Sequence record: ON529855.1
Length of the DNA: 64,000 nucleotides
Reading direction: 5' to 3' (one strand)
The position numbers and the translations under genes are program-made. Of the stretch, positions 47,108 to 58,311 are shown one piece after another; position 1 is the stretch's first letter; the number at the start of each line of letters is the position of its first letter. The notes beneath the pieces are model-generated. The model worked only from the letters and a program-made list of their open reading frames with translations. It had not been told where the DNA came from and did no database searches.

Positions 47108-47111
47108 GCTG

Positions 47112-47186: not shown

Positions 47187-47199
47187 ACACAGAAAAGTG

Positions 47200-47274: not shown

Positions 47275-47275
47275 A

Positions 47276-47359
47276 TGGTGGGAAGGGAGAGAATTCGCAC
47301 TCTCACAGCTTGCGCGGGGGATTTACAGTCCCCTGGGCTCACTCGTGCCCAGCCTGCCC
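47276..47359 (-). tRNA. tRNA-Tyr(GTA)
   Basis: GGGGA-CTGTAAA-TCCCC; long variable arm; CCA. Confidence 0.9.
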
Positions 47360-47372
47360 AAAATGTTACGGC

Positions 47373-47390
47373 TCAGTCGCCGCCGGTCAT
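47373..47390 (-). CDS. mini-ORF MTGGD
   Basis: AGGAG SD 6 nt before ATG ACC GGC GGC GAC TGA, between the terminator and tRNA-Tyr. Confidence 0.35.
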   Translation of the reverse strand: MTGGD

Positions 47391-47419
47391 GGTGATCTCC
47401 TGGATCAGATGAAGGTGTT

Positions 47420-47460
47420 GAAACGGAAAAGGCCCGCCTGGCGGAAACCAGGCGGGCCTT
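47420..47460 (-). terminator. attenuator terminator in front of tRNA array A
   Basis: AAGGCCCGCCTGG-TTTCCG-CCAGGCGGGCCTT followed by TTCCGTTTC. Confidence 0.9.
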
Positions 47461-47491
47461 CGAAACTTGGGAGTTCTAAGTGGGTATCAGA

Positions 47492-47587
47492 TTAAATCTG
47501 CGTCCCACCATCGCCCATGCACGAATGGCCCGCCCGGTTAAACCGGACGACCTGAATCTGCTGCACGTTGTTGCGATAGGTGAACAT
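47492..47587 (-). CDS. attenuator leader peptide A (MFTYRNNVQQIQVVRFNRAGHSCMGDGGTQI), probably leaderless
   Basis: ATG lies 7 nt after the -10 box; codons 2-18 match the downstream tRNA identities. Confidence 0.8.
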   Translation of the reverse strand: MFTYRNNVQQIQVVRFNRAGHSCMGDGGTQI

Positions 47588-47594
47588 GAGAAGA

Positions 47595-47623
47595 CGTTTA
47601 CTACAGGCGACGACCAGTGTCAA
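47595..47623 (-). promoter_or_regulatory. promoter of leader A / tRNA array A
   Basis: TTGACA (47623-47618)-N17-TAAACG (47600-47595). Confidence 0.75.
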
Positions 47624-47625
47624 CA

Positions 47626-47841
47626 TTATTGTCGTCTATGGACCCAAGTTTTTTCGAGGGCGCTGTCCCAGGTCCCCCAGTTGCAGGGATCAGGGTAGTC
47701 CCGATAGCGCCAGCCGCCGCAGTAACGGCACATGGCTTCGGTCTGGTCAGCCTCAGCGGGATGCGGCTCGCAGTCCCCCGAGACGTCGCACAAAGGCCAC
47801 CCGTCCGGCCCCAGGGTGGGGTCGTCGTCCGGGTCCGTCAC
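47626..47841 (-). CDS. hypothetical Cys-containing protein (71 aa)
   Basis: GTG overlapping the upstream TGA; CxxC (CRYC). Confidence 0.5.
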   Translation of the reverse strand: MTDPDDDPTLGPDGWPLCDVSGDCEPHPAEADQTEAMCRYCGGWRYRDYPDPCNWGTWDSALEKTWVHRRQ

Positions 47842-48134
47842 AGGGTGTAATCGACGGTCGGGTCGGGAAGCCAGACCTCTTCCAGCAGACGTTCCTGCCA
47901 CTGGGCCTCGTGGTCCCAGGACAGGATCACGCCGGACCGCGTTTCGCTGCCGTCGATCAGCGTCGCGCAGCCGTAGACGTCAAAGGGCGGCGCGCCATCA
48001 TAGGAATGGTGGCGCAAGGTATAGAGATGGGGACCGTTGCCGCCGCACCAGCGCACCAGGACTTTCGCCCCGTCAGGCAGGGCGCGGATTTCGGCCGGGG
48101 TCAGCCTCGGGGTATCGGGGACGGCGTGGGTCAT
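47838..48134 (-). CDS. hypothetical protein (98 aa)
   Basis: Translationally coupled (TGATG) in a small-gene operon. Confidence 0.65.
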   Translation of the reverse strand: MTHAVPDTPRLTPAEIRALPDGAKVLVRWCGGNGPHLYTLRHHSYDGAPPFDVYGCATLIDGSETRSGVILSWDHEAQWQERLLEEVWLPDPTVDYTL

Positions 48135-48397
48135 CAGGCGGGGTTCGGCGGCGTATACGGCATGGGGCGCAGACGGGGCTCGGCGCGCGGATGACTGATT
48201 CCGGTCGGCATGATGTTCAATTGCAGCCCGGCGCCCCGACGCAGCAGCATCATGAGATCATGGGCGCGCACCGCCTCGGCCGGCGCGGCGAATGTCAGTT
48301 CGATCAGCACGCGATTGCTGTCGGTGCTGCACGCGGTCGCGATCTGGTCAGGCTCCAGGTCCAGAGCCTGCGTGGGACTGATGTTGAGCCGGCTCAT
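48134..48397 (-). CDS. hypothetical protein (87 aa)
   Basis: ATGA overlap with the def stop. Confidence 0.6.
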   Translation of the reverse strand: MSRLNISPTQALDLEPDQIATACSTDSNRVLIELTFAAPAEAVRAHDLMMLLRRGAGLQLNIMPTGISHPRAEPRLRPMPYTPPNPA

Positions 48398-48936
48398 GCG
48401 CGTGTCATCCGACGCACGTTGTCCTGGTGCTTCTTCAGCAGCATCGCCCGCTTCAGCGACGAGACCCGGTCGATGTTGCGCACCCCGTCCAGGTGGTCCA
48501 TCTCGTGCTGAAGACAGATGGCCTTGTAACCCTTGCCCGACACGGTCTGCATACGGCCGTGAATGTCCTGGTATTCGACCGTCACTTCCCGATGCCGGCG
48601 CACGCGGAAAAAGACGCCCGGCATGGACAGGCATCCCTCCGGCATCTCGATCATGTCCTCGGACTTGTCGATGAACGTGGGGTTGATCAGGATCAGTTTG
48701 GGGCGATCGACCATGACGTCTTGCACCGGAAGTCCGGTGTCGGGCAGGTCGATCATGGTGAAGATGCGCAAGGGCACGCCGACCTGAACGGCGGCGAGCC
48801 CCGCGCCCTCGGCCATCAACATGGTGTCGACCATGTCGAAGCAAAGCGCCCGCACCTCGTCGGTGATCTCGAAGACCGTATCGGAGGGCTTCGTCATCAG
48901 GGCGTCGGTGCAGGGGATGATCTGGCGTAGCGCCAT
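48394..48936 (-). CDS. def: peptide deformylase
   Basis: GAGLAAVQVG, EGCLSMPG, QHEMDHLDG. Confidence 0.95.
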   Translation of the reverse strand: MALRQIIPCTDALMTKPSDTVFEITDEVRALCFDMVDTMLMAEGAGLAAVQVGVPLRIFTMIDLPDTGLPVQDVMVDRPKLILINPTFIDKSEDMIEMPEGCLSMPGVFFRVRRHREVTVEYQDIHGRMQTVSGKGYKAICLQHEMDHLDGVRNIDRVSSLKRAMLLKKHQDNVRRMTRA

Positions 48937-49157
48937 TATGCGGGGGTCTCCGAAGGACGCCCGGCGCGCCACAACTCCACAGAATTCTGTCCCGCCTGGA
49001 GAACCTCACTGAGGTCCTCCAGGTGGTCCATCTGCTGTTTCAGCGCCATGCGGGCGTCTTCCAGCCCGATGTCCTGAAGCTTGACGACGCGCCCGCCCAC
49101 CATGACCTGGTAGTCCTGATAGGGCGGCCAATCATCGGGGGGCGTGACGGCCGTCAT
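48936..49157 (-). CDS. hypothetical protein (73 aa)
   Basis: Coupled to neighbours by TGATG and TAATG overlaps. Confidence 0.65.
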   Translation of the reverse strand: MTAVTPPDDWPPYQDYQVMVGGRVVKLQDIGLEDARMALKQQMDHLEDLSEVLQAGQNSVELWRAGRPSETPA

Positions 49158-49453
49158 CAGATTTCTCCGAGCGCGCTCAGGTACAGGTCCAGGATGGCGT
49201 CTTCTTCCTGGCGCTTGGCCTTGTCCTGCTTGCGCAGGCGCAGCACCTTGCGCAGAATCTTCACGTCGTATCCCTCGCCCTTGGCTTCGGCGAAGACTTC
49301 CTTCATGTCGACCATGACGGCCTGCTTGTCCTCTTCGAGGCGCTCCAGCCGCTCGATGATCGAGCGCAGGCGGCCCTGGGCGGAGGCGGTCAGGGCGTCG
49401 TCGGCCGACATGGCGTTGGCGGGCTCGACGCCGGTGATGGTGGTCTCGGTCAT
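49157..49453 (-). CDS. gapR: GapR-like nucleoid-associated protein (DUF2312)
   Basis: AQGRLRSIIERLERLEEDK...KEVFAEAKGEGYDVKILRKVLRLRKQDKAKRQEEDAILDLYLSALGEI, closely matching Caulobacterales GapR as I recall it. Confidence 0.95.
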   Translation of the reverse strand: MTETTITGVEPANAMSADDALTASAQGRLRSIIERLERLEEDKQAVMVDMKEVFAEAKGEGYDVKILRKVLRLRKQDKAKRQEEDAILDLYLSALGEI

Positions 49454-49481
49454 AGGTCTCTCGGGGGGGGTTGGTCGCCGG

Positions 49482-49727
49482 TTATCCGGTGACGAGGTAG
49501 CGAAGGATCGCGAGAAGTTCGCGGTCCGCATCAGGCTGTTGGGCCTTCTGGTCGATGAGGCGCAGGGCGGCGTTCTTGCGCGCCCGCTGTTTGGCGGCGT
49601 GAACGCCGAGAGTCTGCGCCAAGTCGCGCATCTCTGTCTCGTCCACATAGGCGCCGAGCGCATCCCCATACCGTCGGTTGGCGGGGTAGGTGGCGTAGTC
49701 CGGGGCCAGCGGCGGGAGGCCGTCCAT
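49482..49727 (-). CDS. hypothetical protein (81 aa)
   Basis: GGAG SD; coupled to the upstream ORF. Confidence 0.6.
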   Translation of the reverse strand: MDGLPPLAPDYATYPANRRYGDALGAYVDETEMRDLAQTLGVHAAKQRARKNAALRLIDQKAQQPDADRELLAILRYLVTG

Positions 49728-49903
49728 CACATGTCTCCACAAGGATCGTGCAGGGTGTCGCCCTGGTCGAGGTCCTCGACGAAGCGGCCGTTCAGGAAGC
49801 GCCCCGTGGTGGTCTGGCCGTTGAGCCGACGCACGACCCGCAACTGATGGTCCAGCCAGTAGTAGGGCACGCCCCACGCCTCGCGATAGACCGGCTCGGT
49901 CAC
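49727..49903 (-). CDS. hypothetical protein (58 aa, not in ORF track)
   Basis: GTG overlapping the DUF4170 TGA; MTEPVYREAWGVPYYWLDH... Confidence 0.5.
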   Translation of the reverse strand: MTEPVYREAWGVPYYWLDHQLRVVRRLNGQTTTGRFLNGRFVEDLDQGDTLHDPCGDM

Positions 49904-50160
49904 GAGTAGGTCGCGCCCGAAGCCCGGACCACCAGGTCGGCGACGGGTTTGCCATGAGCGACGATCATTTCGTCGTAGGTGTTGATGTGGAAGCGCATCA
50001 GGGCGTTGTCGACCGTCTGCCAGGCATAGGCCTTCCAGGCGTCTCGGGCGTCTTCGCGGCGGGAGAAGGACCCCACGAAGATGATTTTGCGCGGATCGCG
50101 GAAGGCTTCCTCGCGGGGGTGGGGATGCTCGCCCCCATAGACGTAATAGGTGTCAGGCAT
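49900..50160 (-). CDS. DUF4170-family protein
   Basis: YVYGGE...F.DP..I..VGSF....A..AW...AWQTVDNALMRFHI. Confidence 0.75.
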   Translation of the reverse strand: MPDTYYVYGGEHPHPREEAFRDPRKIIFVGSFSRREDARDAWKAYAWQTVDNALMRFHINTYDEMIVAHGKPVADLVVRASGATYS

Positions 50161-50162
50161 GC

Positions 50163-51050
50163 TTACAAAGTCACGATCAGGCGGGGATTGAAGTTCGGGT
50201 TCAGTTCATGCCCGACATAGCCGCGAGGATTGCAGATCACGCGGGTCTCGCCGATCTGGTAGTCGCTGCTGTCATGCATGTGACCATGGACCCACAAGGC
50301 GGGCTCCCACTCCAACATCAGCGGCTCCAGCCGCGACGCATAGGCGGGGTTCAGCGGCGATCCCCGATAACGAGGATGGCTCGACTGCTCCGACGGCGCA
50401 TGGTGGGAGATCACCACGGTCGGGCCGTCATGAGGAACCCGCAGCGTTTCCGTCAGGAAGAAGCGGCTTTCCAGATGAAGGCGCCGCGTGTCGTCCGCCG
50501 TCAGGCGCTGCTGCTGCTTCAATTCGATCTGCCGATAGTCGTTCATGTCCGACTGGGCGTGCCGGATCGACAAGGGCCAGGTCCCATAGAGGTCGAAATC
50601 GGTCCACAGGGTGGCGCCGAGGAAACGCACGTCGCCCACATGGACCTGCTCGTTATCCATGACGAAGACGCGGGCGGGCGCCAGTTCGTCAGCCTTGGCC
50701 TTCATCTTCTCGATGTGGCGGTGGTAGCGCCGCTTGCCGTAGAACTCGTGATTGCCCGGAACATAGAGGCAGGGGACGTCAGGGAAATGCCGCGCCAGCC
50801 AGATCACGCCGACGACGCCCGTCGCCAGGTCGCCGGCGGCGATGACCACGTCGATCTCGTCAGCCGTGGGCGCCGTCCAGGTGCGACGGTCCATTCCGCC
50901 GAACTCCAGATGGAGGTCCGACAGGATCAGGGCGCGCAACGGCCGTCGTCCAGGAGTCCGCCGCGCCAGGCCGGCTTCGATGTCAGCCTGCATGTCGGCC
51001 GCAGCCGCCACAGTGAACTCCATCTCAGCCTTGCTCCACTTGGTCTCCAT
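50163..51050 (-). CDS. calcineurin-like metallophosphoesterase
   Basis: SDLHLE, AAGDL, VPGNHEFY, VISHHAP, WVHGHMH, VICNPRGY. Confidence 0.95.
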   Translation of the reverse strand: METKWSKAEMEFTVAAAADMQADIEAGLARRTPGRRPLRALILSDLHLEFGGMDRRTWTAPTADEIDVVIAAGDLATGVVGVIWLARHFPDVPCLYVPGNHEFYGKRRYHRHIEKMKAKADELAPARVFVMDNEQVHVGDVRFLGATLWTDFDLYGTWPLSIRHAQSDMNDYRQIELKQQQRLTADDTRRLHLESRFFLTETLRVPHDGPTVVISHHAPSEQSSHPRYRGSPLNPAYASRLEPLMLEWEPALWVHGHMHDSSDYQIGETRVICNPRGYVGHELNPNFNPRLIVTL

Positions 51051-51070
51051 CGTGGAGCATCCTTGAAATC

Positions 51071-51189
51071 TGGAGCGGGTGGACAGACTCGAACTGCCGC
51101 CTCCGGGTTAGCCACCCGGCGCTCCTGGGTCCACGCGAACCCCCGACGATGATTCGCGTGATCATCGTCGGCCCTAGAGCCTCACCCGC
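51071..51189 (-). ncRNA. 119-nt tRNA-like RNA with two hairpins inserted in the D loop
   Basis: GCGGGTG/CACCCGC acceptor, U73, CCA; GCTC/GAGC D stem enclosing 52 nt; CCGGG-TGGCTAA-CCCGG; GGCAG-TTCGAGT-CTGTC. Confidence 0.8.
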
Positions 51190-51426
51190 ATAAGTTGGCA
51201 GGAGTTTTCAGATATGGCGAACCATACCCAGGGCGACCCTCCTGCCAGGAACCCCCGTCTCGGTTTCTTTCACTGGCCCCGACACGAGCACCTGTCAAAG
51301 CCTATCTAGCCGCCAGGCTTGCGGAACGTCTCGGGCGATTAGGCGCCTCGGGATGAACAGCGTTGCGGACGGCGTAGCATCGGCTTGCCGTGATTACTGA
51401 CAGACGGCGCCGGTGGTGTCAACAAT

Positions 51427-51460
51427 GAAAAACGCCCCGACCTTTCGATCGGGGCGTTCT
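51427..51460 (-). terminator. intrinsic terminator
   Basis: AACGCCCCGATC-GAAA-GGTCGGGGCGTT followed by TTT. Confidence 0.85.
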
Positions 51461-51772
51461 TCAGAGGTTCGCCATCCACTGCTTACGGCAGCGGGTGTGA
51501 TCCTTCCAGGACTTGCCGCCGGGGCGCGACGCCATGAGGTCGTCGTAGGACGAGGGAAGGACCATGCGTCGGCCACGGGCGCGGTAGAGGCGATCGTGGG
51601 CTTCGCCGATGTTGCGCCGCCGCTCCTGCATGGTGCGGGGGCAGCGGTGCATGTAGCGCCAGCGGTGGCGGAAGCGCCGGCAGCGGTAGGGCTCGCCGGG
51701 CTCCAGGTAGAGGACGCGCCAGCCCACGAAGTAGAAGCCGGAGTGGGTGACGCGCTCGAATTGGGGCTTCAT
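51461..51772 (-). CDS. basic hypothetical protein (103 aa), LPxxYDD...SWK...RKQW type
   Basis: AGGAGG SD; very Arg-rich; at the end of tRNA array B. Confidence 0.8.
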   Translation of the reverse strand: MKPQFERVTHSGFYFVGWRVLYLEPGEPYRCRRFRHRWRYMHRCPRTMQERRRNIGEAHDRLYRARGRRMVLPSSYDDLMASRPGGKSWKDHTRCRKQWMANL

Positions 51773-51872
51773 GTCAGCCTCCTGCTAGGTTGAGTACCTA
51801 GCGGGTGCTGTATTCCAGGTAGAACTTGATCATGGGATCATCCTAGCCCAAGCGGGGCTGTTCGTCTAGGAA

Positions 51873-51961
51873 TGGCGGATGGGGCAGGGATCGAACCCGC
51901 GTAACCCTCTCGGGTGTCGACCGCTTAGCAAGCGGCTGCCTTACCTCTCGGCCACCCATCC
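51873..51961 (-). tRNA. tRNA-Ser(GCT)
   Basis: GCCGC-TTGCTAA-GCGGT; long variable arm; G73; CCA. Confidence 0.95.
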
Positions 51962-51968
51962 GGGGTGT

Positions 51969-52053
51969 TGGCGGTGCGCCAGGGAATCGAACCCTCAACC
52001 TTGCGGTCGGCGACGGTTTTCAAGACCGCTTGTCCCCATGGACGCTGCGCACC
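51969..52053 (-). tRNA. tRNA-Ser(TGA)
   Basis: GCGGT-CTTGAAA-ACCGT; D arm GTCC-ATGG-GGAC; long variable arm; CCA. Confidence 0.9.
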
Positions 52054-52058
52054 GAAGG

Positions 52059-52149
52059 TGGCGGACGGCACGCGATTCGAACGCGTGGGACCCAGGGGGT
52101 CCGCCTGCCTTCCAAGCAGGTGCCTTAAGCCGGGCTCAGCCAGCCGTCC
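52059..52149 (-). tRNA. tRNA-Ser(GGA)
   Basis: CCTGC-TTGGAAG-GCAGG; long variable arm; CCA. Confidence 0.95.
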
Positions 52150-52154
52150 GGTGT

Positions 52155-52372
52155 TGGTGGAGGCGAGGGGATTCGAACCCCCGTAGACGCCGAACCCTCG
52201 CATTACCAAGGGCCGATCTCAGGTTTAGAACGCGTGTGCCGCCCTGACCATCTTCCGCAGGCCAGGGGGTCTATCGTAACGACCCCGTCGATCGGTTGCC
52301 TCTGCGTCCCGGATTTACCCGGACCGTTGCTCTGTTCCACGGTGCTCATGCCGAAACCCGAGCGACGCCCCC
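52155..52372 (-). ncRNA. 218-nt tRNA-like RNA with Ala-type acceptor (G3.U70, A73, CCA)
   Basis: 5' GGGGGCG pairs with 3' CGCCTCC-ACCA; T arm GGGGG-TTCGAAT-CCCCT; about 140 extra nt in several hairpins; flanked by short spacers like its tRNA neighbours. Confidence 0.75.
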
Positions 52373-52381
52373 GTGAAGAAA

Positions 52382-52469
52382 TGGAGGATGGTGTGGGATT
52401 CGAACCCACGGAACCTTGCGGTCCACCGGTTTTCGAAACCGGCGCGATCGGCCTCTCCGCCAACCATCC
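52382..52469 (-). tRNA. tRNA-Ser(CGA)
   Basis: CCGGT-TTCGAAA-ACCGG; long variable arm; U73; CCA. Confidence 0.95.
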
Positions 52470-52476
52470 AGAACAG

Positions 52477-52665
52477 TCAGGCCGAGGCCGGACTGTAGTT
52501 GTCGATGTCGTCGACCCGGATCGCCGTGCCCGCCGCAATCTGGCGGTCGGCGCTCAACAGTTCGGCGACCAGGTCGTCGGCCGTGACGGCGGCGCCGGAG
52601 GTGGCGAACTTCACGTTCACCAGGCGGCCGTCAGCGAACATCTCGTCGATCGCGGCGCGATCCAT
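52477..52665 (-). CDS. hypothetical protein (62 aa) embedded in the tRNA array
   Basis: GAAAGG SD; MDRAAIDEMFADGRLVNVKF... Confidence 0.6.
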   Translation of the reverse strand: MDRAAIDEMFADGRLVNVKFATSGAAVTADDLVAELLSADRQIAAGTAIRVDDIDNYSPASA

Positions 52666-52698
52666 GATAGACCTTTCTGCCGGCCTCGCCGGCGGTGA

Positions 52699-52769
52699 TG
52701 GTGGAGACAGTGGGGCTCGAACCCACCAAGGCTTCCTTGCAAAGGATGCCTGCGCCCTGCGCTGTCCCC
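52699..52769 (-). tRNA. tRNA-Ala(TGC), shortened D arm
   Basis: GGGGACA/TGTCTCC with G3.U70; loop TTTGCAA; A73; CCA. Confidence 0.85.
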
Positions 52770-52806
52770 GTAGGGGTTGAGTGTCAGCCATGCCGACAAT
52801 AAGTGT

Positions 52807-52882
52807 TGGTCCTGGCACTCAGATTCGAACTGAGCCATCGTGCTCCACAAACACGCGCCTCCACCGCAGAGGCTTTACCAGG
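52807..52882 (-). tRNA. tRNA-His(GTG), no G-1, A73
   Basis: CGTGT-TTGTGGA-GCACG; only a 2-nt spacer (AC) after the preceding CCA. Confidence 0.9.
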
Positions 52883-52884
52883 GT

Positions 52885-52972
52885 TGGTCGCGACGACAGG
52901 GGTCGAACCTGCCCGGCCTTTCGGCCACTACCACCTCAAGGTAGCGCGTCTACCAGACTCCGCCACGTCGCG
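52885..52972 (-). tRNA. tRNA-Leu(GAG)
   Basis: CTACC-TTGAGGT-GGTAG; long variable arm; CCA. Confidence 0.95.
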
Positions 52973-52981
52973 ATCGAAAGT

Positions 52982-53067
52982 TGGTGCCCGTCCCCGGACT
53001 CGAACCGGGACGCCACGAGGGCCACGCCTTTTGAGGGCGCTGCGTCTACCTTTCCGTCCAGACGGGC
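52982..53067 (-). tRNA. tRNA-Leu(CAA)
   Basis: GCGCC-CTCAAAA-GGCGT; long variable arm; CCA. Confidence 0.95.
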
Positions 53068-53077
53068 AGTTGAAAAA

Positions 53078-53164
53078 TGGTGCGGGCGAGAGGATTCGAA
53101 CCTCCCCGGCACAAAGGCCACGAGTACCTGAGACTCGCGCGGCTACCAACTTCGCCACGCCCGC
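53078..53164 (-). tRNA. tRNA-Leu(CAG)
   Basis: CGAGT-CTCAGGT-ACTCG; long variable arm; CCA. Confidence 0.95.
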
Positions 53165-53169
53165 ATTTT

Positions 53170-53251
53170 TGGAGAACCCTGGTGGAGTCGAACCACTTGC
53201 GCCTGGATTAAAAGCCCAATCCCGGCCACCCGGATTTAACGCTCAAGGTCC
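53170..53251 (-). tRNA. tRNA-Lys(TTT), atypical D region
   Basis: TTGGG-CTTTTAA-TCCAG; GGACCTT/AGGGTTC acceptor; CCA. Confidence 0.75.
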
Positions 53252-53264
53252 CCTAAAGTTATGT

Positions 53265-53355
53265 TGGTGAACGTGGTCGGACTCGCACCGACGATGAAGG
53301 TTGTAACCTAACGGGATTAAGAGCCCCGGCCTCTCGCTACTGAGGTGACACGTCC
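53265..53355 (-). tRNA. tRNA-Lys(CTT) with long variable arm
   Basis: CGGGG-CTCTTAA-TCCCG; variable hairpin AGGT-TACA-ACCT; T loop TGCGAGT; CCA. Confidence 0.85.
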
Positions 53356-53390
53356 AAAACTGTTGTTCTTCTCTCCTGAAGACTTGAAAA

Positions 53391-53461
53391 TGGAGCCGGC
53401 GGACGGTGTCGAACCGTCCCATGTCCACTACGAAAGGTCAGCCCTGCCACCAGGCGCCGGC
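53391..53461 (-). tRNA. tRNA-Thr(CGT), degenerate anticodon stem, mini D arm
   Basis: Perfect GCCGGCG/CGCCGGC acceptor (G1-C72, C2-G71); GACCT-TTCGTAG-TGGAC; next to Thr(GGT); CCA. Confidence 0.6.
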
Positions 53462-53467
53462 GTTGTT

Positions 53468-53538
53468 TGGTGCCAAGGGAGGGAGTCAAACCCTCGCTGA
53501 ACCCATACCAAGGGCTCGACCGATCACCCGGCCTTGGC
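53468..53538 (-). tRNA. tRNA-Thr(GGT), short D arm
   Basis: AGCCC-TTGGTAT-GGGTT; GCCAAGG/CCTTGGC acceptor; CCA. Confidence 0.8.
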
Positions 53539-53546
53539 GTTGATGT

Positions 53547-53621
53547 TGGTCGGAACACCAGGATTCGAACCTGGGACCCCTAGCTTCCCGAGCCAGTGCG
53601 CTACCGCTGCGCTACATTCCG
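53547..53621 (-). tRNA. tRNA-Pro(GGG), C at position 33
   Basis: CTGGC-TCGGGAA-GCTAG; C1-G72; CCA. Confidence 0.9.
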
Positions 53622-53630
53622 AGTTGATGA

Positions 53631-53707
53631 TGGTCGGCGAGGGAGGATTCGAACCTCCGATCCCTCCGACCCGAACGGAGTGACTTACCAGACTTGCCCA
53701 CACGCCG
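53631..53707 (-). tRNA. tRNA-Pro(CGG)
   Basis: CTCCG-TTCGGGT-CGGAG; C1-G72; CCA. Confidence 0.9.
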
Positions 53708-53710
53708 ATG

Positions 53711-53749
53711 GAAACGAAAAAGGCCCCGGAGGCTTTGCGCCTGGGGCCT
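53711..53749 (-). terminator. attenuator terminator in front of tRNA array B
   Basis: AGGCCCC...GGGGCCT stem followed by TTTTCGTTTC, ending 3 nt before tRNA-Pro. Confidence 0.85.
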
Positions 53750-53821
53750 GAAACATCTGCTGTTTTGGGGTTCAGCAGGTGATCGGCCCCTTAGGGCGCC
53801 TCACCTGCTTGGTGCCTGTTG

Positions 53822-53953
53822 TTACAGGAAACCTTCCAGGGAGACGCCACCGGTGGTGGGGGACTTCGTCGACAGTTTCGGCGCATGCGCGAGCGTCGAC
53901 AGCGCCGTGGCGGCGGTCGAAAGCGGGCTCAGCTTGTGCGACAAGGTGGTCAC
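53822..53953 (-). CDS. attenuator leader peptide B (MTTLSHKLSPLSTAATALSTLAHAPKLSTKSPTTGGVSLEGFL)
   Basis: GTG start with weak GGA SD; codons 2-34 use only T/L/S/H/K/P/A, the identities of array B. Confidence 0.8.
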   Translation of the reverse strand: MTTLSHKLSPLSTAATALSTLAHAPKLSTKSPTTGGVSLEGFL

Positions 53954-54005
53954 GATGAAGGTCCAGTCCGAAGAAGGAGCGCAAATGCGCTGTGATGAAG
54001 TCTGA

Positions 54006-54034
54006 TCTCTACAGGAAGCTTGAGCGTATGTCAA
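54006..54034 (-). promoter_or_regulatory. promoter of leader B / tRNA array B
   Basis: TTGACA (54034-54029)-N17-TAGAGA (54011-54006). Confidence 0.7.
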
Positions 54035-54217
54035 GAACTTCAGAAGAAAAAAGTTGAGGAGCGATGTGTGCGTCCCGCTCGAAACGTCTTGTGCCAGGAT
54101 CAACGGCAGACGTCAACAGGAAAATGCACGCGCGCGGCCGAGGGGGAGCGGAAGACCGCGCGCGTGCCGGCAGACCGTCGGGGGACGGGGCCTGGGGTCG
54201 TCGGGGGACGGGGAGGG

Positions 54218-54454
54218 TCAGCCGGCGCGGCGCTTGAGCGTCTCGTGCAGCGGCGGATAGGGGACCGGGGCGTAGATCACCTCGACCAGGCGAGGGCGGC
54301 GGCCGGTGCGGATTTTGGCAGGCAGGGGCACGTTGCGGCGCCGCAGTTCGGCGGCGGCGGCGGCGCTCGCCAGGGAGCCCGACAGGTAGACGCCGATCAG
54401 TTCGGCGACCGTCAGGGTCATCATGCGCTGGGCGCGGGTGGTGTTGTGAGCCAC
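54218..54454 (-). CDS. hypothetical protein (78 aa)
   Basis: GGAGAG SD before GTG. Confidence 0.55.
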   Translation of the reverse strand: MAHNTTRAQRMMTLTVAELIGVYLSGSLASAAAAAELRRRNVPLPAKIRTGRRPRLVEVIYAPVPYPPLHETLKRRAG

Positions 54455-54553
54455 GAGGGTCTCTCCATCTGGATGTGATCCAGGCGAGAGACACGGGCGC
54501 GCGCTAGGCGGCCGCGAAGGGTCTCCGTCCTGGAAGTTACCAGATGCGAGAGA

Positions 54554-54745
54554 TTAGTCGGAGGGCTTGGCCCCGAAGACCGAGGCGATCGCCGTCAAAG
54601 CCTTCTTGACCCGGTTGGGTCGTTGGGTCAGCGCCGAGGCGCAGACCTTCTTGATTTCGTCAAGGGTGAGCGAGGCCGGGTCACGCAGGCCGCGCGCGGC
54701 GATCGAGCCGACGCTGGCGGAGGTGACTTCGGTGGTGGTGCTCAT
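54554..54745 (-). CDS. small hypothetical protein (63 aa)
   Basis: GAGG SD; TSASVGSIAARGL...EIKKVCASALTQ resembles small alphaproteobacterial/phage proteins. Confidence 0.7.
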   Translation of the reverse strand: MSTTTEVTSASVGSIAARGLRDPASLTLDEIKKVCASALTQRPNRVKKALTAIASVFGAKPSD

Positions 54746-54755
54746 GGGAAACCTC

Positions 54756-54830
54756 TGGCGAGTCCAAGGGGAGTTGAACCCCTCTCTCCACCGTGACAGG
54801 GTGGTGTCCTAACCGATAGACGATGGACCC
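54756..54830 (-). tRNA. tRNA-Asp(GTC)
   Basis: CCACC-CTGTCAC-GGTGG; G73; CCA. Confidence 0.95.
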
Positions 54831-54861
54831 GTATCAGAGGGTCGATCCGCAGGAAGATGCT

Positions 54862-54939
54862 TGGAAGGGCGCCGGAGACTCGAACTCCGCTCACTTGGTT
54901 GAAAGCCAAGTATCCTGCAAACCGCTAGACGAGCGCCCC
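54862..54939 (-). tRNA. tRNA-Glu(TTC)
   Basis: CTTGG-CTTTCAA-CCAAG; CCA. Confidence 0.9.
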
Positions 54940-54973
54940 ATAAAGCACAGGGCGTCGAACACGAGAGCCGCGA

Positions 54974-55039
54974 TTAGGCGGCGGTCGTATCTCGGCCCTG
55001 GAAGGCCTCTCGTTCGTAGCTGGTCAGACGGTAGGTCAT
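54974..55039 (-). CDS. putative leaderless 21-aa peptide (MTYRLTSYEREAFQGRDTTAA)
   Basis: ATG 6 nt after TTGACA-N17-TACAAG (55074-55046); precedes tRNA-Glu/Asp. Confidence 0.4.
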   Translation of the reverse strand: MTYRLTSYEREAFQGRDTTAA

Positions 55040-55070
55040 TTGTCGCTTGTATCAGAACTGTCGGTGGGTG

Positions 55071-55250
55071 TCAAGAAGGACGGCGAATCTTTTTGGACCT
55101 TGCATGGGGTCGGTCTTCCTCGGCCTCAGGCTCGGCCGCGTCCCAGGCCATCCACAGGGCCGCGAGAAAAGCAGGCGGACCCATCAAGTCTTCCAACCGC
55201 TTCAAGGCCCGGTCGTTGGCCGCCAGGAAGGCGTCGCCGTATTCAAGCAT
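55071..55250 (-). CDS. hypothetical protein (59 aa, not in ORF track)
   Basis: GAGGT SD; MLEYGDAFLAANDRALKRLEDLM... Confidence 0.55.
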   Translation of the reverse strand: MLEYGDAFLAANDRALKRLEDLMGPPAFLAALWMAWDAAEPEAEEDRPHARSKKIRRPS

Positions 55251-55264
55251 CGTGACCTCGGGAG

Positions 55265-55695
55265 ATTTCAGGGGGCCGGCTTTGGCGCGCGGCGTTTAAC
55301 CGCCGGCGCCTAGACGGAGGCAGCGTGCCAGCCCTGCTCGACTGGCCCAGCCCCCTCAAGGCGATGAGTGCCAGGAAAGGCGGCAATGGTCAAGGGGAAA
55401 TGCGGTGGGTACAGCTTCAACCGGCCTTGCGGCCTGCGGGTCTTTCGGGCGTCCTGCCCACCGCGCCTACTACGACGCCTTTTTCGGCCCCGGCGCGCCG
55501 GAGAGAAAAAATCGACGGGTGACCGCTACCGGCCTCGCCTGCTGGCCCGTCCCAGCGCCTGACCTTCTCTTCGCGACGCCCTTGTGGGCGTTATGGCCTT
55601 CCCGTCCGAAGACAGACGCCGTGAAGGGTCAGCGGGACCGCATGATCGTCAGCCGCACGGCCAGCGCGGCGAGCGGATCAGAGGCCTGTCCCGGA
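55265..55695 (-). ncRNA. candidate structured ncRNA downstream of tRNA-Gly
   Basis: No credible ORF; nested stems with cUUCGg and GNRA loops. Confidence 0.4.
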
Positions 55696-55700
55696 AAGAA

Positions 55701-55774
55701 TGGAGCGACTGGTCGGAATCGAACCGACGTCCCCAGGGTGGAAACCTAGTGCTAAGCCTCTCAGCTACAGCCGC
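55701..55774 (-). tRNA. tRNA-Gly(TCC)
   Basis: CTAGG-TTTCCAC-CCTGG; U73; CCA. Confidence 0.95.
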
Positions 55775-55788
55775 AGTATAAAAGAGGG

Positions 55789-55864
55789 TGGAGCGACTCT
55801 CGGGACTCGAACCCGACCCTGCGCGTTGGCAACGCGTTGTACCCACCCATAATACGTGAGTCGC
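55789..55864 (-). tRNA. tRNA-Gly(GCC)
   Basis: ACGCG-TTGCCAA-CGCGC; U73; CCA. Confidence 0.9.
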
Positions 55865-55877
55865 AGTGGTTAATAAA

Positions 55878-55959
55878 TGGCACGGGTGGAGGGATTCGAA
55901 CCCCCGACGTATGCTGGTTTTGGAGACCAGTGCCTTGAGCCAGACTTGGCGACACCCGT
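55878..55959 (-). tRNA. tRNA-Trp(CCA)
   Basis: CTGGT-CTCCAAA-ACCAG; G73; CCA. Confidence 0.95.
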
Positions 55960-55972
55960 GTAAACTTGAAAG

Positions 55973-56497
55973 CTACTTATAACGCTCTTGAATGAACTTG
56001 ACAACCCGCTGCGGCGTACTTTCGTCGGCGGTGGTGCGAAAATCGATCCGATCCCCCAGCAGGGCCAGCAGCTTCTGATCCACCTCCAGGGCTTCCGCCT
56101 CGTTGTGGTGGCGGCCGTAGGTCTGATAGGCGGACGCCGGGCGATCGAGCCAGACGTTGACGTTCTCGTAGGAATCGAAAAGGTCGAAGACCTCCTGATG
56201 GAACTCCGGCTGGGCGTAGTCGCCCTGGCCGTAGACGCAGCCCAACAGCAGGGGACTGTCGGTCAAAATCCAATCGACGTGACCGAGGAATCGTTTCAGC
56301 CGGGACGCCTGTTTCCAGGTGACGCGGCGCTGATCGGCCAAGGTCGCCCAGTCCTGACTGACGGAGCGCTCGGTGGCGTACTCCTCGACCTGGGCGGCGC
56401 GGTATCCGCCGATCTTCAGGTGAAAGAAGGTCCCGGCCTTGACCGTCGACTTACCGCCGCACGGGCCAGACCAGAAGTTCAGGACACGCGTCGTCAT
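55973..56497 (-). CDS. NadR/AAA_28-type P-loop kinase/ATPase
   Basis: NFWSGPCGGKST Walker A; VEEYATE; ILTDSPLL. Confidence 0.8.
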   Translation of the reverse strand: MTTRVLNFWSGPCGGKSTVKAGTFFHLKIGGYRAAQVEEYATERSVSQDWATLADQRRVTWKQASRLKRFLGHVDWILTDSPLLLGCVYGQGDYAQPEFHQEVFDLFDSYENVNVWLDRPASAYQTYGRHHNEAEALEVDQKLLALLGDRIDFRTTADESTPQRVVKFIQERYK

Positions 56498-56565
56498 GCA
56501 GCAAACGGACTTTCAACCGGCTGTAGGGATTCAGATTGTGGGGGTGGCGCATTGCGCCGGCAGGT

Positions 56566-56865
56566 TTAGCTGCGCCAGCTTCCGTCGGCGTCGTCAACGA
56601 CGTCCGGGGCATCCAGATCGGCTTCGACCGTCCGGCGCTGTCGACCTCGACCTCGTCCGCGCGGCGCCTCTTGGGCGTCTTCGGGCTCAGCCTGCACGAT
56701 CAGGGCCTCGACGGCATCGACGACGATCTCAACCGGAGGGGCGACTTCGACACGGGTCCAGGGCGTGCGCGACCATCCGTGCTGAAGCACGAGGGAGCCG
56801 GCCTTCGCCGAGGGAACGTCGAAGGGCTCGCAAGTTTCCGGATGATAAACGCGCTCGGTAGCCAT
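56566..56865 (-). CDS. hypothetical protein (99 aa)
   Basis: Own promoter TTGACA-N17-TAAGGT (56902-56874); ATG 8 nt after the -10 box, so leaderless or nearly so. Confidence 0.7.
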   Translation of the reverse strand: MATERVYHPETCEPFDVPSAKAGSLVLQHGWSRTPWTRVEVAPPVEIVVDAVEALIVQAEPEDAQEAPRGRGRGRQRRTVEADLDAPDVVDDADGSWRS

Positions 56866-56914
56866 AAGGAGGGACCTTATACGAACTCTGCGCGATTGTC
56901 AATTATTACGGCAG

Positions 56915-57700
56915 TCAGTCGAGCGCCCAGTTGAACCACACCGCCTTTTTCTCGCCCGGCGCCTCAGCGTATTCGGGCTCCAGCGGCGTGACGAAGTCGT
57001 TGAGGAAGACGCCGTTCAAGAAGTCGCCGGTTGCGCGGTGGCCGTGAATGAAGCGCGGCTCCCCGCCGGCACCATAGGCGTCAAACCCCTGGCCGAGTCG
57101 CCAGCCGTTGATACGGCGAACCGTCCGCGCCTCCTGGGTCCACAGGTAAGCGCGATAGGCCCCGCGCCGCAGGCGCGTGTTGAGCGCGAGCCGCAGCATG
57201 ACGCCGTTAAGCGGGGCCTCCTCGATATGCGAGAAGACGAGATGGTCGGCGGAATCGTAGAGACCGATCCGCACGGCGCCTGCGCCCGCGCTCAGCCATA
57301 CCCCCGCCTCGGTCAGCCGAATCGTGTCCGAGGCGACGTGGAAGGTCTCGAACAGGATCGTCTCGGCCGGCAAGTCGGCTTCTTCCGGTGCGCCATCGAA
57401 CGCCAGTCCCGGCACCGCAAATCCCCCAGGAGGAGCGTCCACCGCCACGACCCCATCGACGACAGCCAGGGGCGCCAGGTCGGGGTCCCAGGTCAGGACG
57501 CCGGCTTTGCGCGACAGCGGCGCGCTTTGCGGCCCCGTCGCGGGGGCCACGCCGGAGGCGGCTGACGGCAGATGGATGGATTCAGGACGGCCGTCGACGC
57601 GCAGGTGCAGCCTGCGGTCCGCCGTATTGTGCCCGACCTGCCCCGGCAGCAGGTGAGGTCGGGCGTTCGGCGTGGCCGAGTGTTTGTTCTGGATCGCCAT
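56915..57700 (-). CDS. virion fibre-associated protein (261 aa)
   Basis: N-terminal collar-like motif (LLPGQVGHNTADRRLH); coupled to the upstream genes. Confidence 0.65.
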   Translation of the reverse strand: MAIQNKHSATPNARPHLLPGQVGHNTADRRLHLRVDGRPESIHLPSAASGVAPATGPQSAPLSRKAGVLTWDPDLAPLAVVDGVVAVDAPPGGFAVPGLAFDGAPEEADLPAETILFETFHVASDTIRLTEAGVWLSAGAGAVRIGLYDSADHLVFSHIEEAPLNGVMLRLALNTRLRRGAYRAYLWTQEARTVRRINGWRLGQGFDAYGAGGEPRFIHGHRATGDFLNGVFLNDFVTPLEPEYAEAPGEKKAVWFNWALD

Positions 57701-58311
57701 CAGAGGAACCGCAGGGAAACAACGTGGTGTTGAGGAATGGACGACCAGGGCGACATGGTCTGGACATGCTCCACAATCAGGTTCGACGTCGTGGGCGTCG
57801 TCTCGATCGTATAATGCCCCGGCTCCAGCCAGCGGTCGAAACCTGGCTCCAGGGTCATGGCGCCGTTGATCGCGAAGTCGTGCGTTTCGAGCAGGAGCCC
57901 TTTCACATCGAACAGACGCGCAGTGAGCGTGCCCGTGCCGCCGTTGCTGCGCAGCCGCATCGCGATCAGTCGAGCCGGCTCGGCCAGAGCGATCGTCGTC
58001 GTGCGGACAATGCCGCCGAAGGGCAGGAAGCCGACCGCCACCGGCGCGCAGCCCGGCAGCACCCAGACCTTGCGGTCCATGGGACGCCCGCCGCCGCCTG
58101 CCTGAAGCGGGCCATGCTCGACGCCTTCGGGCGTCATCAGGCGGACGTCGTCGCCCCCCAGGGCGCGTTCCGGCAGAAGCGGCACGCTCATGTCAAAGGA
58201 GTCCTGACCGACGCCCAGGATGCGCGCTTCTCGGTCAATCGTCAGTTCGCCCGGCGCGCGAGGCTCGACCGGGCTCACCTCGAACGGCGTGAGGTAGATG
58301 GTATCAGGCAT
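57700..58311 (-). CDS. virion fibre-associated protein (203 aa)
   Basis: TGATG coupling on both sides; beta-rich C-terminus. Confidence 0.65.
   Translation of the reverse strand: MPDTIYLTPFEVSPVEPRAPGELTIDREARILGVGQDSFDMSVPLLPERALGGDDVRLMTPEGVEHGPLQAGGGGRPMDRKVWVLPGCAPVAVGFLPFGGIVRTTTIALAEPARLIAMRLRSNGGTGTLTARLFDVKGLLLETHDFAINGAMTLEPGFDRWLEPGHYTIETTPTTSNLIVEHVQTMSPWSSIPQHHVVSLRFL

Follow-up and report, generated by a model that had tools for sequence, protein, structure and literature searches.

A leader open reading frame with a matching codon composition and mutually exclusive hairpins precedes a 15-tRNA array in Brevundimonas phage Domovoi: computational evidence for a probable transcription attenuator

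A leader, here called leader B, was identified in front of a 15-tRNA array of Brevundimonas phage vB_BpoS-Domovoi, and is probably a ribosome-mediated (leader-peptide) transcription attenuator which gates and autoregulates the array; the case for this is entirely in silico. The window analyzed was a 64,000-nt part of the 352-kb phage genome. On its minus strand, to which all coordinates of leader B and its array refer, a promoter-like site is followed by a 43-codon ORF, overlapping hairpins, a terminator and then the 15 tRNA genes. What rests on sequence or computation is the ORF and its composition, the helices and the way they exclude each other, a switch in the folding model that depends on ribosome position, and conservation throughout the subfamily. 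Domovoi probably makes more of the array tRNAs when ribosomes run short of them.

The promoter-like site (54006-54034) is composed of TTGACA (54034-54029), a 17-nt spacer and TAGAGA (54011-54006). Its function is inferred, as is the transcription start, tentatively placed near 53999. A generic sigma-70 scan did not report this site because its -10 element agrees with TATAAT at only three of six positions. The motif TTGACA-N12-15-TGTAG occurs twice in the window, before leader B and before a second leader (leader A), against 0.02 occurrences expected. The site was kept in seven of eight Brevundimonas phages, the sequence of Bajun being unalignable here. The 5' untranslated leader (53954-54005) carries a small hairpin (AGCGCAUUUGCGCU) and an SD-like GGA (53964-53962) located 8 nt 5' of the GTG; a purine-rich GGA or AGGA was present at the equivalent place upstream of the leader ORF in all Brevundimonas lineages. 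When the sequence was read from the inferred transcript start to the GTG, no in-frame start codon was found.

Leader ORF B (53822-53953), which begins approximately 45 nt after the inferred transcription start, extends from the GTG at 53953 to the TAA at 53824-53822 and specifies, in 43 codons, the product MTTLSHKLSPLSTAATALSTLAHAPKLSTKSPTTGGVSLEGFL. It has no annotation in the Domovoi GenBank record. The open frame alone says little, since in DNA of 65% GC other frames on both strands are also open here. The signs of translation are a start codon kept as GTG or ATG, in-frame indels and the SD-like GGA; the SD is weak and the start codon of Domovoi is GTG. Translation is inferred, without translation data. 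Kabachok and Papperlapapp are annotated with a gene on the other strand, a possibility that was rejected here: antisense frames are open in some lineages, as GC-rich DNA predicts, and are short in Gurke, Kikimora, Colossus and BL9.

The proposed sensing codons are codons 2-34 (53852-53950), which specify solely the seven amino acids of the downstream tRNAs. An earlier note, made from the sequence alone, had given the coordinates and sequence of this ORF and listed the 33 codons, all of which were found again at 53950-53852. All 33 encode Thr, Leu, Ser, His, Lys, Pro or Ala, exactly the amino acids of the array, and 31 are read by array anticodons under strict wobble rules, the two GCC codons being the sole exceptions, as had been claimed. 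Every one of the 15 array anticodons is sampled. Based on the composition of 39 long ORFs of the window, the chance of a residue falling within the set is 0.422, giving P = 4e-13 for 33 of 33; at the codon level the chance is 0.343, which makes P = 9e-13 for at least 31 of 33. Of the 582 ORFs with 25 or more codons in the six frames of the window, leader B has the longest run in the array's amino-acid set (33), the runner-up having 16.

The array (51873-53707) contains, in its first part, genes for tRNA-Pro (cgg and ggg), Thr (ggt and cgt) and Lys (ctt and ttt), followed in transcription order by Leu (cag, caa and gag), His (gtg) and Ala (tgc). Its last part consists of a 62-aa CDS, Ser (cga), a tmRNA-like gene, and Ser (gga, tga and gct). 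The earlier count of 15 tRNAs held with a reservation: 11 were called by ARAGORN at default settings, while Thr(ggt), Thr(cgt), Lys(ctt) and Lys(ttt) are non-canonical and need relaxed criteria or homology. Thr(cgt) and the two tRNA-Lys genes appeared only with relaxed ARAGORN thresholds, and Thr(ggt) was assigned by homology with ARAGORN-called genes of Bajun and phiCbK. Lys(ctt) is supported by an Rfam score of 38.6 bits; in the same database Thr(ggt), Thr(cgt) and Lys(ttt) were below threshold or unmatched, and Ala(tgc) scored only 20 bits. The terminator U tract ends 9 nt before tRNA-Pro, the first gene of the array, so that at least the first tRNAs could be obtained solely through read-through.

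A leader ORF with a GTG or ATG start was present at the homologous position in all 14 phages examined (Domovoi and 13 other Dolichocephalovirinae), and is annotated as a hypothetical CDS in Bajun, phiCbK (gp083, phrog_12742), S2L, BL9, SC and RB23. The four indels within the ORF are all multiples of 3, the flanking ones mostly 1-2 nt. A protein homology search with the 43-aa leader B gave no candidate, and a Pfam search with the leaders gave no match. In the PHROGs search the sole match of the leaders was that of phiCbK gp083 to its own PHROG, of unknown function, which the Domovoi peptide did not match; the short motifs LSHK and LAHAP persist across clades. In the sensing part, 17 of 18 residue states among Brevundimonas phages and 56 of 64 over all lineages lie within the set of the array, compared with an expected share of 47% for random single-nucleotide replacements. 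In 10 of 11 lineages the leader samples all anticodons of its array. In the Bertelyvirus phages the array has gained a tRNA-Trp and the leader carries a TGG codon. Selection on leader composition rather than on sequence, as these comparisons would suggest, is counted as support for attenuation; the lineages share ancestry and are therefore not independent trials of the composition match. Scans of IMG/VR with a conserved ORF word and with the pattern of one leader hairpin (2:3, below) returned only chance matches inside unrelated genes, and an IMG/VR search anchored on the neighbouring metallophosphatase returned 51 loci, all from distant low-GC phages without the leader locus. The metagenome pattern TGTCGCAYAA-N1-4-CTGAGC, which was too loose, gave no leader-like ORF among the 120 matches listed.

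Leader A, located at 47587-47492, is not homologous to leader B; its peptide begins MFTYRNNVQQIQVVRFNR. Of 17 codons compared, 16 specify amino acids carried by the tRNAs of its own array (Tyr, Phe, Val, Ile, Gln, Asn and Arg; P = 1e-7), a set disjoint from that of leader B. In the folding model it is a classical four-segment attenuator, as in biosynthesis operons, opened solely by stalls at Ile, Gln or Val codons. Leader A is listed among the support as an independent replicate of the match between leader and array. There is perhaps also a leader C of 21 codons before a Glu/Asp array.

The RNA of leader B was resolved into five, perhaps six, segments. Segment 1 (53825-53851, GGUGGCGUCUCCCUGGAAGGUUUCCUG) is the 3' end of the ORF, codons 35-43. 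Segment 2 (53795-53821, CAACAGGCACCAAGCAGGUGAGGCGCC) is the strand following the stop codon, and is the partner of either segment 1 or segment 3 (53773-53794, CUAAGGGGCCGAUCACCUGCUG), which in turn is the partner of segment 2 or segment 4 (53739-53772, CAGCAGAUG...GGCCCCAGGC). Segment 4 includes the 5' arm of the intrinsic terminator (53717-53748), which reads GGCCCCAGGC-GCAAA-GCCU-CC-GGGGCC (53748-53722) followed by UUUUU (53721-53717). A possible segment 0 (53852-53870, GACGAAGUCCCCCACCACC; codons 28-34) can pair with the start of segment 1 in constrained MFE structures, and its role is inferred.

Three pairings proposed by eye in the earlier note (1:2, 2:3 and 3:4) were reproduced with ViennaRNA. 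In Domovoi, helix 1:2 has 20 bp and -30.7 kcal/mol (z -4.4 versus shuffles), with the stop codon (53824-53822) in its apical loop; helix 2:3 (AGCAGGUGA/UCACCUGCU) has -25.0 kcal/mol (z -4.3), its 5' arm beginning 12 nt past the stop, just beyond the footprint of a terminating ribosome; and helix 3:4, GGGGCC...GGCCCC with CACCUGCUG/CAGCAGAUG, has -24.2 kcal/mol (z -3.7). The terminator (4:5) has a 10-bp GC-rich stem, U5 and -20.7 kcal/mol (z -3.3). These z-scores were computed for segments picked after the structures had been seen. A generic terminator scan did not list the terminator at 53748-53717, probably because its stem is bulged; that it works as a terminator is inferred, with no experimental evidence. 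The MFE structure of segments 1-5 was 1:2 plus 3:4 in all five Brevundimonas lineages. With segments 1-3 only, the 1:2 and 2:3 states are nearly iso-energetic because 2:3 can form alongside the apical part of 1:2. An estimate in which 1:2 was more stable than 2:3 by 5-9 kcal/mol was discarded as misleading, since 2:3 coexists with the apical stop-codon hairpin. At equilibrium the terminator 5' arm was always paired in transcripts ending before the 3' arm, and this comparison was uninformative.

Attenuation would proceed as follows. A host-type promoter would start the transcript, in which the 43-codon ORF comes first, and 33 of its codons would be decoded by the 15 tRNAs encoded immediately downstream. 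When the cognate aminoacyl-tRNAs are scarce, a ribosome slowed or stalled within the matched codons would leave segment 1 free to pair with segment 2; segment 3 would then pair with 4, no terminator would form, and RNA polymerase would enter the array and supply more of the limiting tRNAs. With fast decoding the ribosome would cover segment 1 and the stop codon, so that 2:3 and 4:5, the latter joining the two terminator arms, would form and transcription would end, leaving an attenuated RNA of roughly 280 nt. The array would in this way exert negative feedback on its own expression. The physiological signal is inferred to be the supply of tRNA rather than of amino acid.

This dependence on ribosome position was supported by constrained equilibrium folding of the Domovoi leader with a ribosome footprint. 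The probability of the terminator was at most 0.17 with the P-site at codons 1-33, 0.68 at codon 34 and at least 0.9 at codons 35-43, in agreement with the earlier proposal that stalling upstream leads to read-through and arrival at the end of the ORF to termination. A terminator dominant at all ribosome positions would have refuted that proposal; it was not dominant for stalls at codons 1-33, and the refutation therefore did not materialize. The model changes state at codon 34, just where the matched codons run out. With a barrier of 9 kcal/mol, a crude heuristic for co-transcriptional folding formed the terminator with the ribosome at codons 34-43 and not at codons 2-32 or without a ribosome; it is noisy, and its outcome varies with the barrier threshold. 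The switch was placed at codons 33-38 in Bambus, Gurke, Kikimora, phiCbK, Rogue, Ccr10, Colossus and PW, and had no clear place in Bajun and BL9. The equilibrium and heuristic kinetic models rarely or never favoured termination in Gurke, Kikimora and, above all, Bajun. Under a pairing-span limit of 90 nt, the terminator still formed (P 0.6-0.9) after early stalls in Domovoi, Bambus and Ccr10, except at P-site codons 29-32; in Domovoi only stalls at about these codons prevented it robustly, which pairing of segment 0 with the beginning of segment 1 would explain. It depends on the model whether each of the 33 codons is a sensing position. That stalling causes read-through in vivo is inferred, without experimental evidence.

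The same calculations leave room for an attenuator that is real and reads general translation status (e.g., ribosome availability or coupling to RNA polymerase), codon composition being secondary. The ribosome-free models also read through (P of the terminator 0.004-0.30), so that any loss of translation would open the gate, and the robust structural window is just a few codons when long-range pairs are forbidden. This explanation is nevertheless unlikely, for it accounts neither for the confinement of 33 codons to the seven amino acids of the array and the within-set replacements, nor for the use by the second leader of its own array's disjoint set, nor for the joint gain of tRNA-Trp and the TGG codon in Bertelyvirus.

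The structural features were examined across the subfamily. The ORF, its composition and the alternative pairings of the five-segment scheme recur in all 13 other phages, and four groups can be told apart whose stems are unrelated in sequence. Despite their unrelated stems, the phiCbK/Rogue/Ccr10, Colossus/PW and BL9 groups fall into the same two states when equal constraints are imposed, and most of their helices are significant (z -2.4 to -5.6); the terminator of Colossus is weak (-8.5 kcal/mol, z -1.3, with a poor U tract). The stop codon lies within the apical loop of 1:2 in 10 of 11 folded lineages, and in Colossus/PW just 5' of the apical hairpin. C-terminal residues of the leader vary freely, yet their pairing with the post-stop strand is retained. 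The terminator is conserved in all eight Brevundimonas phages, and a rho-independent terminator is annotated at the homologous site in the phiCbK record (JX100813, 49,745-49,769). Helices 2:3, 3:4 and 4:5 are nearly invariant among Brevundimonas phages and formal covariation is thin: the RNAalifold covariation term was +0.87, with a compensatory change in 3 of 29 pairs, all in the apical stem (the stop-codon hairpin), on a MAFFT alignment in which Bajun is misaligned. All Brevundimonas lineages share the site of a mismatch in the pairing CACCUGCUG/CAGCAG[A/U/C]UG, where G never occurs.

These observations bear on whether the ORF is an ordinary gene for a small, low-complexity protein rich in Ser, Thr, Ala, Pro and Leu, followed by a leaky terminator, with the array match and the alternative hairpins incidental. 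Homologues are annotated as hypothetical proteins, phiCbK gp083 has a PHROG of its own (phrog_12742, unknown function), the LSHK and LAHAP motifs persist across clades, and GC-rich RNA folds readily. The peptide has, however, diverged past HMM recognition while its composition was retained, and it has no Pfam match; its C-terminal residues are free to vary while the pairing is kept, with the stop codon in or beside the apical loop. Most of the overlapping helices beat shuffles in four sequence families, and the composition has P of about 1e-12 and a second independent case, all of which makes an ordinary small gene quite improbable. Very improbable is a terminator overcome by an antiterminator protein or RNA of phage or host, or hairpins serving as processing or stability elements of the tRNA precursor, with the ORF untranslated: antitermination by dedicated factors is common in phages, the structured region lies directly against the first tRNA, a place of necessary RNase P/E processing, and evidence of translation is absent, but the frame-specific composition, the in-frame indels, the conserved start and the coincidence of the model switch with the end of the matched run remain unexplained, and no Rfam element matches.

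Attenuation by leader translation, the reading preferred here, has well-known counterparts. Leader B shares with trpL, hisL, leuL, thrL, ilvL and pheL of Enterobacteria and with Sinorhizobium trpL a short promoter-proximal ORF rich in regulatory codons, and with such biosynthesis-operon attenuators the mutually exclusive hairpins ending in an intrinsic terminator and the rule that a stall at regulatory codons gives the antiterminator and a ribosome at the end gives the terminator. Classical attenuators precede genes for biosynthesis or aminoacyl-tRNA synthetases, whereas leader B precedes 15 tRNA genes, a tmRNA-like gene and a 62-aa CDS; the molecule sensed would be the molecule made, because the regulated genes are tRNA genes and not enzymes. 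A classical leader has a stretch of codons for a single amino acid or a pair of them; those of leader B stand for seven amino acids and sample 15 anticodons. Its segments number five (perhaps six), unlike those of classical attenuators, and in its models the absence of translation therefore yields read-through. Unlike the biosynthesis-operon attenuators, it is found in the genome of a virulent phage.

In the pheM leader of E. coli pheST, the decoding speed of cognate codons sets the expression of phenylalanyl-tRNA synthetase. In both cases a component of the translation apparatus would be under a leader with cognate codons; the target of pheM is a synthetase and its signal a single amino acid or tRNA, whereas leader B would control tRNA genes and sense 15 tRNAs. 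T-box elements likewise couple tRNA status to terminator read-through by an antiterminator/terminator choice before translation-related genes. They recognize uncharged tRNA by direct contact, using a specifier codon and the T-box bulge, with no need of translation, while leader B has a conserved ORF and no T-box match. Searching Rfam over 44000-58000 (E up to 1) revealed no T-box, no Thr, His, Leu, Trp or Phe leader and no other cis-regulatory family, and a T-box riboswitch or an Rfam amino-acid leader family was ruled out on this basis.

In the reports on phiCbK-like phages (Gill et al. 2012, PMC3556154) and Brevundimonas phages (Friedrich et al. 2023, PMC10070969), which cover these very genomes and arrays, the tRNAs were treated as codon-usage helpers, and neither mentions leaders, attenuation or a codon match. 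In the phiCbK record the Glu, Pro and Phe arrays are preceded by annotated terminators, and gp083 is entered as a 45-aa hypothetical gene. No leader or attenuator before tRNA genes, of phages or of bacteria, was found in the literature searched, and as far as that literature shows no tRNA genes before these would have been seen under the control of leader-peptide attenuation.

Large phages may carry tens of tRNA genes, and the reason for this and their control are debated; codon-usage matching, offsetting the decay of host tRNAs and evasion of tRNA-cleaving defences have been proposed as roles. A broader and doubtful possibility is that every promoter-bearing array of the subfamily has its own leader ORF as a roll-call of its tRNAs. 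The phage would then measure decoding capacity codon by codon and induce replacement tRNAs only when those of the host fall, for example through host shut-off, tRNA decay or anticodon-nuclease defences, and the arrays would be an inducible, self-sensing supply or counter-defence rather than constitutive helpers of codon usage. If leader B is an attenuator, it is a natural multi-codon sensor of translation speed and lets decoding capacity feed back directly on tRNA synthesis. The idea of supply on demand becomes testable in two harmless and tractable systems, phiCbK with Caulobacter crescentus and Domovoi with Brevundimonas pondensis, and small ORFs beside phage tRNA arrays, whether annotated as hypothetical or not annotated at all, may be regulatory.

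The window aligns with 100% identity to the genome of Brevundimonas phage vB_BpoS-Domovoi (ON529855, 352,705 bp), a member of the Dolichocephalovirinae. Leader B, a unit comprising a promoter-like site, a short ORF, overlapping hairpins and a terminator in front of a tRNA array, lies on the minus strand of the Domovoi genome within a 510-nt stretch, unannotated in the record, between DOMOVOI_04990 and the first tRNA-Pro gene. As read from the sequence, a promoter-like TTGACA (54034-54029) is separated by a 17-nt spacer from TAGAGA (54011-54006) and is followed by a 5' leader of about 45 nt, with an SD-like GGA located 8 nt 5' of a GTG at 53953. The ORF of 43 codons extends from this GTG to a TAA at 53824-53822 and specifies the peptide MTTLSHKLSPLSTAATALSTLAHAPKLSTKSPTTGGVSLEGFL. 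Two conserved hairpin regions lie between it and the terminator GGCCCCAGGC-GCAAA-GCCU-CC-GGGGCC-UUUUU (53748-53717), and tRNA-Pro(cgg) begins at 53707, nine nucleotides past the latter. Further upstream, 3' of DOMOVOI_04990 in the region 54100-54170 (minus strand), a GC-rich hairpin (GCACGCGCGCGG...CCGCGCGCGUGC) is followed by AUUUUCC and by a second promoter-like site, TTGACG, approximately 90 nt upstream of the leader B promoter on the same strand; the leader unit thus seems insulated from upstream transcription. In Papperlapapp an insertion of roughly 120 bp lies close upstream of the leader B promoter (L005, its leader B locus, ~3620-3740, minus strand); Domovoi and Kabachok, elsewhere 99% identical to it, lack this insertion. 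A 50-aa hypothetical CDS is annotated on the plus strand, antisense to the leader ORF, in Kabachok (L004, 3460-3612) and Papperlapapp (L005, 3456-3608). Judged from sequence, this is probably a spurious GC-rich call, since Gurke, Kikimora, Colossus and BL9 have only short frames on that strand.

The array behind leader B encodes tRNAs for Pro, Thr, Lys, Leu, His, Ala and Ser. ARAGORN at default settings called 11 tRNAs within 53707-51873, and a lowered threshold added Thr(cgt), Lys(ctt) and Lys(ttt); a further gene at ~53538-53465, with the anticodon loop UUGGUAU, is homologous to the ARAGORN-called Thr(ggt) of Bajun and phiCbK. Lys(ctt) has Rfam support (38.6 bits), while Thr(ggt), Thr(cgt) and Lys(ttt) were below threshold or without a match in Rfam. 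The 15 tRNAs claimed in the earlier note were therefore recovered by ARAGORN, Rfam and homology, but four of them are non-canonical. Two other genes lie inside the array on the minus strand. DOMOVOI_04910, a 62-aa CDS (52477-52665) between Ala(tgc) and Ser(cga), is conserved in relatives and, being embedded in the array, would share the transcript of the tRNAs and the proposed attenuator. A 218-nt tmRNA-like gene (52155-52372) separates Ser(cga) from Ser(gga). Its acceptor stem, GGGGGCG...CGCCUCCACCA, includes a G3:U70 pair, its T arm is canonical and it ends in CCA. It scored 32 bits in Rfam tmRNA (gathering score 47) and was not called by ARAGORN; the Domovoi genome paper reports no tmRNA (PMC10070969).

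Codons 2-34 of the ORF, read on the minus strand, agree exactly with the list in the earlier note, and all 33 specify residues of the array. Based on the codon usage of 39 long ORFs of the window, where these seven residues account for 42.2% of codons, the probability of such a match is 4e-13. Under strict wobble 31 of the 33 codons are read by the array, the two GCC codons being the only exceptions as had been claimed; the background share of the 22 codons that the array anticodons decode is 34.3% (P = 9e-13 for at least 31 of 33). Every one of the 15 anticodons finds one or more of its codons in the run, an outcome with P = 0.05 even when the composition is taken as given. No other among the window's 582 six-frame ORFs (25 codons or more) has a run of array residues as long as these 33, the runner-up reaching 16.

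The locus was found in seven more Brevundimonas phages (Kabachok, Papperlapapp, Bambus, Marchewka, Gurke, Kikimora and Bajun) and in the Caulobacter phages phiCbK/S2L, Ccr10, Rogue, Colossus, PW, BL9, SC and RB23. In all of these an ORF of 39-48 codons with a GTG or ATG start lies upstream of an array with tRNA-Pro first, which encodes the same seven amino acids when relaxed ARAGORN calls and the conserved Thr genes are counted. Several of the homologues carry a hypothetical-protein annotation; that of phiCbK, gp083, belongs to phrog_12742, of unknown function, a profile to which the Domovoi peptide gave no match. Indels within the ORF are all multiples of three, those in the flanks mostly 1-2 nt. 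At variable columns before segment 1 (the last nine ORF codons), 17 of 18 residue states in Brevundimonas phages and 56 of 64 in all lineages fall within the seven-residue set, compared with 47% of random single-nucleotide replacements, indicating that composition is conserved while sequence drifts. All array anticodons are sampled by the leader in 10 of 11 lineages. Bertelyvirus (BL9, SC, RB23) has an extra tRNA-Trp in the array and a TGG codon in the leader; Trp is absent from the part of the leader before segment 1 in all other lineages.

Segment 1 of the RNA is thus the ORF end, and the strand after the stop codon is segment 2; segment 3 supplies the 3' arm of helix 2:3, and the terminator arms are segments 4 and 5. 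In Domovoi the predicted energies of helices 1:2, 2:3, 3:4 and 4:5 (the terminator) were -30.7, -25.0, -24.2 and -20.7 kcal/mol, with z-scores of -4.4, -4.3, -3.7 and -3.3, respectively, against 200 dinucleotide shuffles; the apical loop of helix 1:2 holds the leader stop codon. The combination of 1:2 and 3:4 was the MFE structure of segments 1-5 in five of five Brevundimonas lineages. RNAalifold on a MAFFT alignment returned the opposite state (stop-codon hairpin, 2:3 and terminator), with compensatory changes confined to the stop-codon hairpin. A ribosome was then modeled by masking P-12 to P+14 and folding the RNA 3' of it as far as the terminator stem. For P-site codons 1-33 of Domovoi the terminator probability was at most 0.17 (mostly below 0.03), rising to 0.68 at codon 34 and 0.90-0.97 at codons 35-43, so that the switch point coincides with the end of the array-matched run. 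The switch codon was 34-35 in Bambus, Gurke, Kikimora, phiCbK and Rogue, 38 in Ccr10 and 33 in Colossus and PW. The three groups of Caulobacter phages have unrelated stems (CGGGUGC.., CAGAAGCGGC.., CGGGUGCCGC..), with helices mostly significant, and adopt the same two states under constraints. A crude co-transcriptional heuristic (9 kcal/mol barrier) gave read-through in Domovoi without a ribosome and at codons 2-32, and termination at codons 34-43.

These models have limits. With segments 1-3 only, the 1:2 and 2:3 states are nearly iso-energetic because 2:3 is compatible with the apical portion of 1:2, and a figure of 5-9 kcal/mol for the advantage of 1:2 is overstated. The low terminator probability at early stalls in Domovoi, Bambus and Ccr10 depends on long-range pairs; under a span limit of 90 nt it was kept only at P-site codons 29-32, where the ribosome covers "segment 0" (codons 28-34), otherwise a competitor for segment 1. 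In Gurke, Kikimora and Bajun a nested rival to the terminated state pairs GGCGCC of segment 2 with GGCGC of the terminator, and the models formed the terminator rarely or never. Interconversion barriers were estimated at 9-17 kcal/mol, comparable to transcription times.

A second such unit, leader A, precedes the other large array of the window, which has the order Tyr, Phe, Val, Ile, Val, Gln, Asn, Arg, Arg. On the minus strand it comprises a promoter of the leader B type (47623-47601), the ORF MFTYRNNVQQIQVVRFNRAGHSCMGDGGTQI (47587-47492) and the terminator GGCCCGCCUGG-UUUCCG-CCAGGCGGGCC-UUUU (47458-47431). The motif TTGACA-N12-15-TGTAG occurs at only two sites in the 64 kb, upstream of leaders A and B, versus 0.02 expected. 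Sixteen of codons 2-18 belong to the set of leader A's own array (P = 1e-7), which is disjoint from that of leader B. It folds as a classical four-segment attenuator, open only at P-site codons 10-13, where the A-site residues are Ile, Gln, Val and Val; ORF and terminator also occur in phiCbK-like phages. Leader C is a candidate (54940-55073, minus strand) in which a TTGACA promoter-like site is followed by the 21-codon ORF MTYRLTSYEREAFQGRDTTAA. As read from sequence, the loop of a hairpin contains its stop codon, and a further, long hairpin with UGCUUUAU adjoins tRNA-Glu/tRNA-Asp. The ORF, 20-21 codons across lineages, keeps Glu and Asp codons in every one, with no enrichment by count, and a terminator is annotated in phiCbK at the homologous site.

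The tRNA genes of 46516-55959 (minus strand) are sorted by amino acid into the disjoint arrays {Y,F,V,I,Q,N,R}, {P,T,K,L,H,A,S}, {E,D} and {W,G}, jointly covering 18 amino acids (Met and Cys are missing), an order maintained from Brevundimonas to Caulobacter phages. GenBank omits no fewer than eight tRNA-like genes at 53170-53538 and 46516-47359 (minus strand): two for Thr (ggt and cgt), two for Lys (ctt, which has a long variable arm, and ttt), Tyr(gta), Phe(gaa) and two for Arg (cct and ccg). Most of them deviate in structure yet are kept across the subfamily, and several encode the CCA end. Homologous Thr and Tyr genes appear to be present in phiCbK-like phages, contrary to Gill et al. (2012), who state that these tRNAs are absent (PMC3556154).

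The codon-matched leader described in the earlier note is thus borne out by sequence and composition statistics, and its attenuator interpretation is supported in silico only. Leader B is quite probably a ribosome-mediated transcription attenuator gating the tRNA array and decoded by the gated tRNAs, translation and read-through being inferred; slow decoding would open the gate and fast decoding would close it. Less probably, the leader could serve as a general translation sensor, or encode an ordinary small protein followed by a leaky terminator; both leave unexplained the frame-specific composition and its upkeep when residues are replaced, and account for neither leader A nor the Trp co-variation. 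Factor-dependent antitermination or processing leaves these four points unexplained too. Leader B is not a T-box or a member of another Rfam family, Rfam giving no match for it at E up to 1.

As an attenuator, leader B would act like the trp, his, thr, ilv, leu and phe leaders and the pheM-pheST attenuator, from which it differs in being phage-encoded, in its number of segments, in sensing seven amino acids through 15 anticodons and in having tRNA genes as its target. The genome papers for these phages mention no leader or attenuator (PMC3556154, PMC10070969), and full-text searches turned up nothing on tRNA genes controlled by a leader peptide; prior description elsewhere is not excluded. The best-supported reading is that leader B represents a variation on a known attenuation mechanism, with a target, tRNA genes, that is new as far as the literature found.
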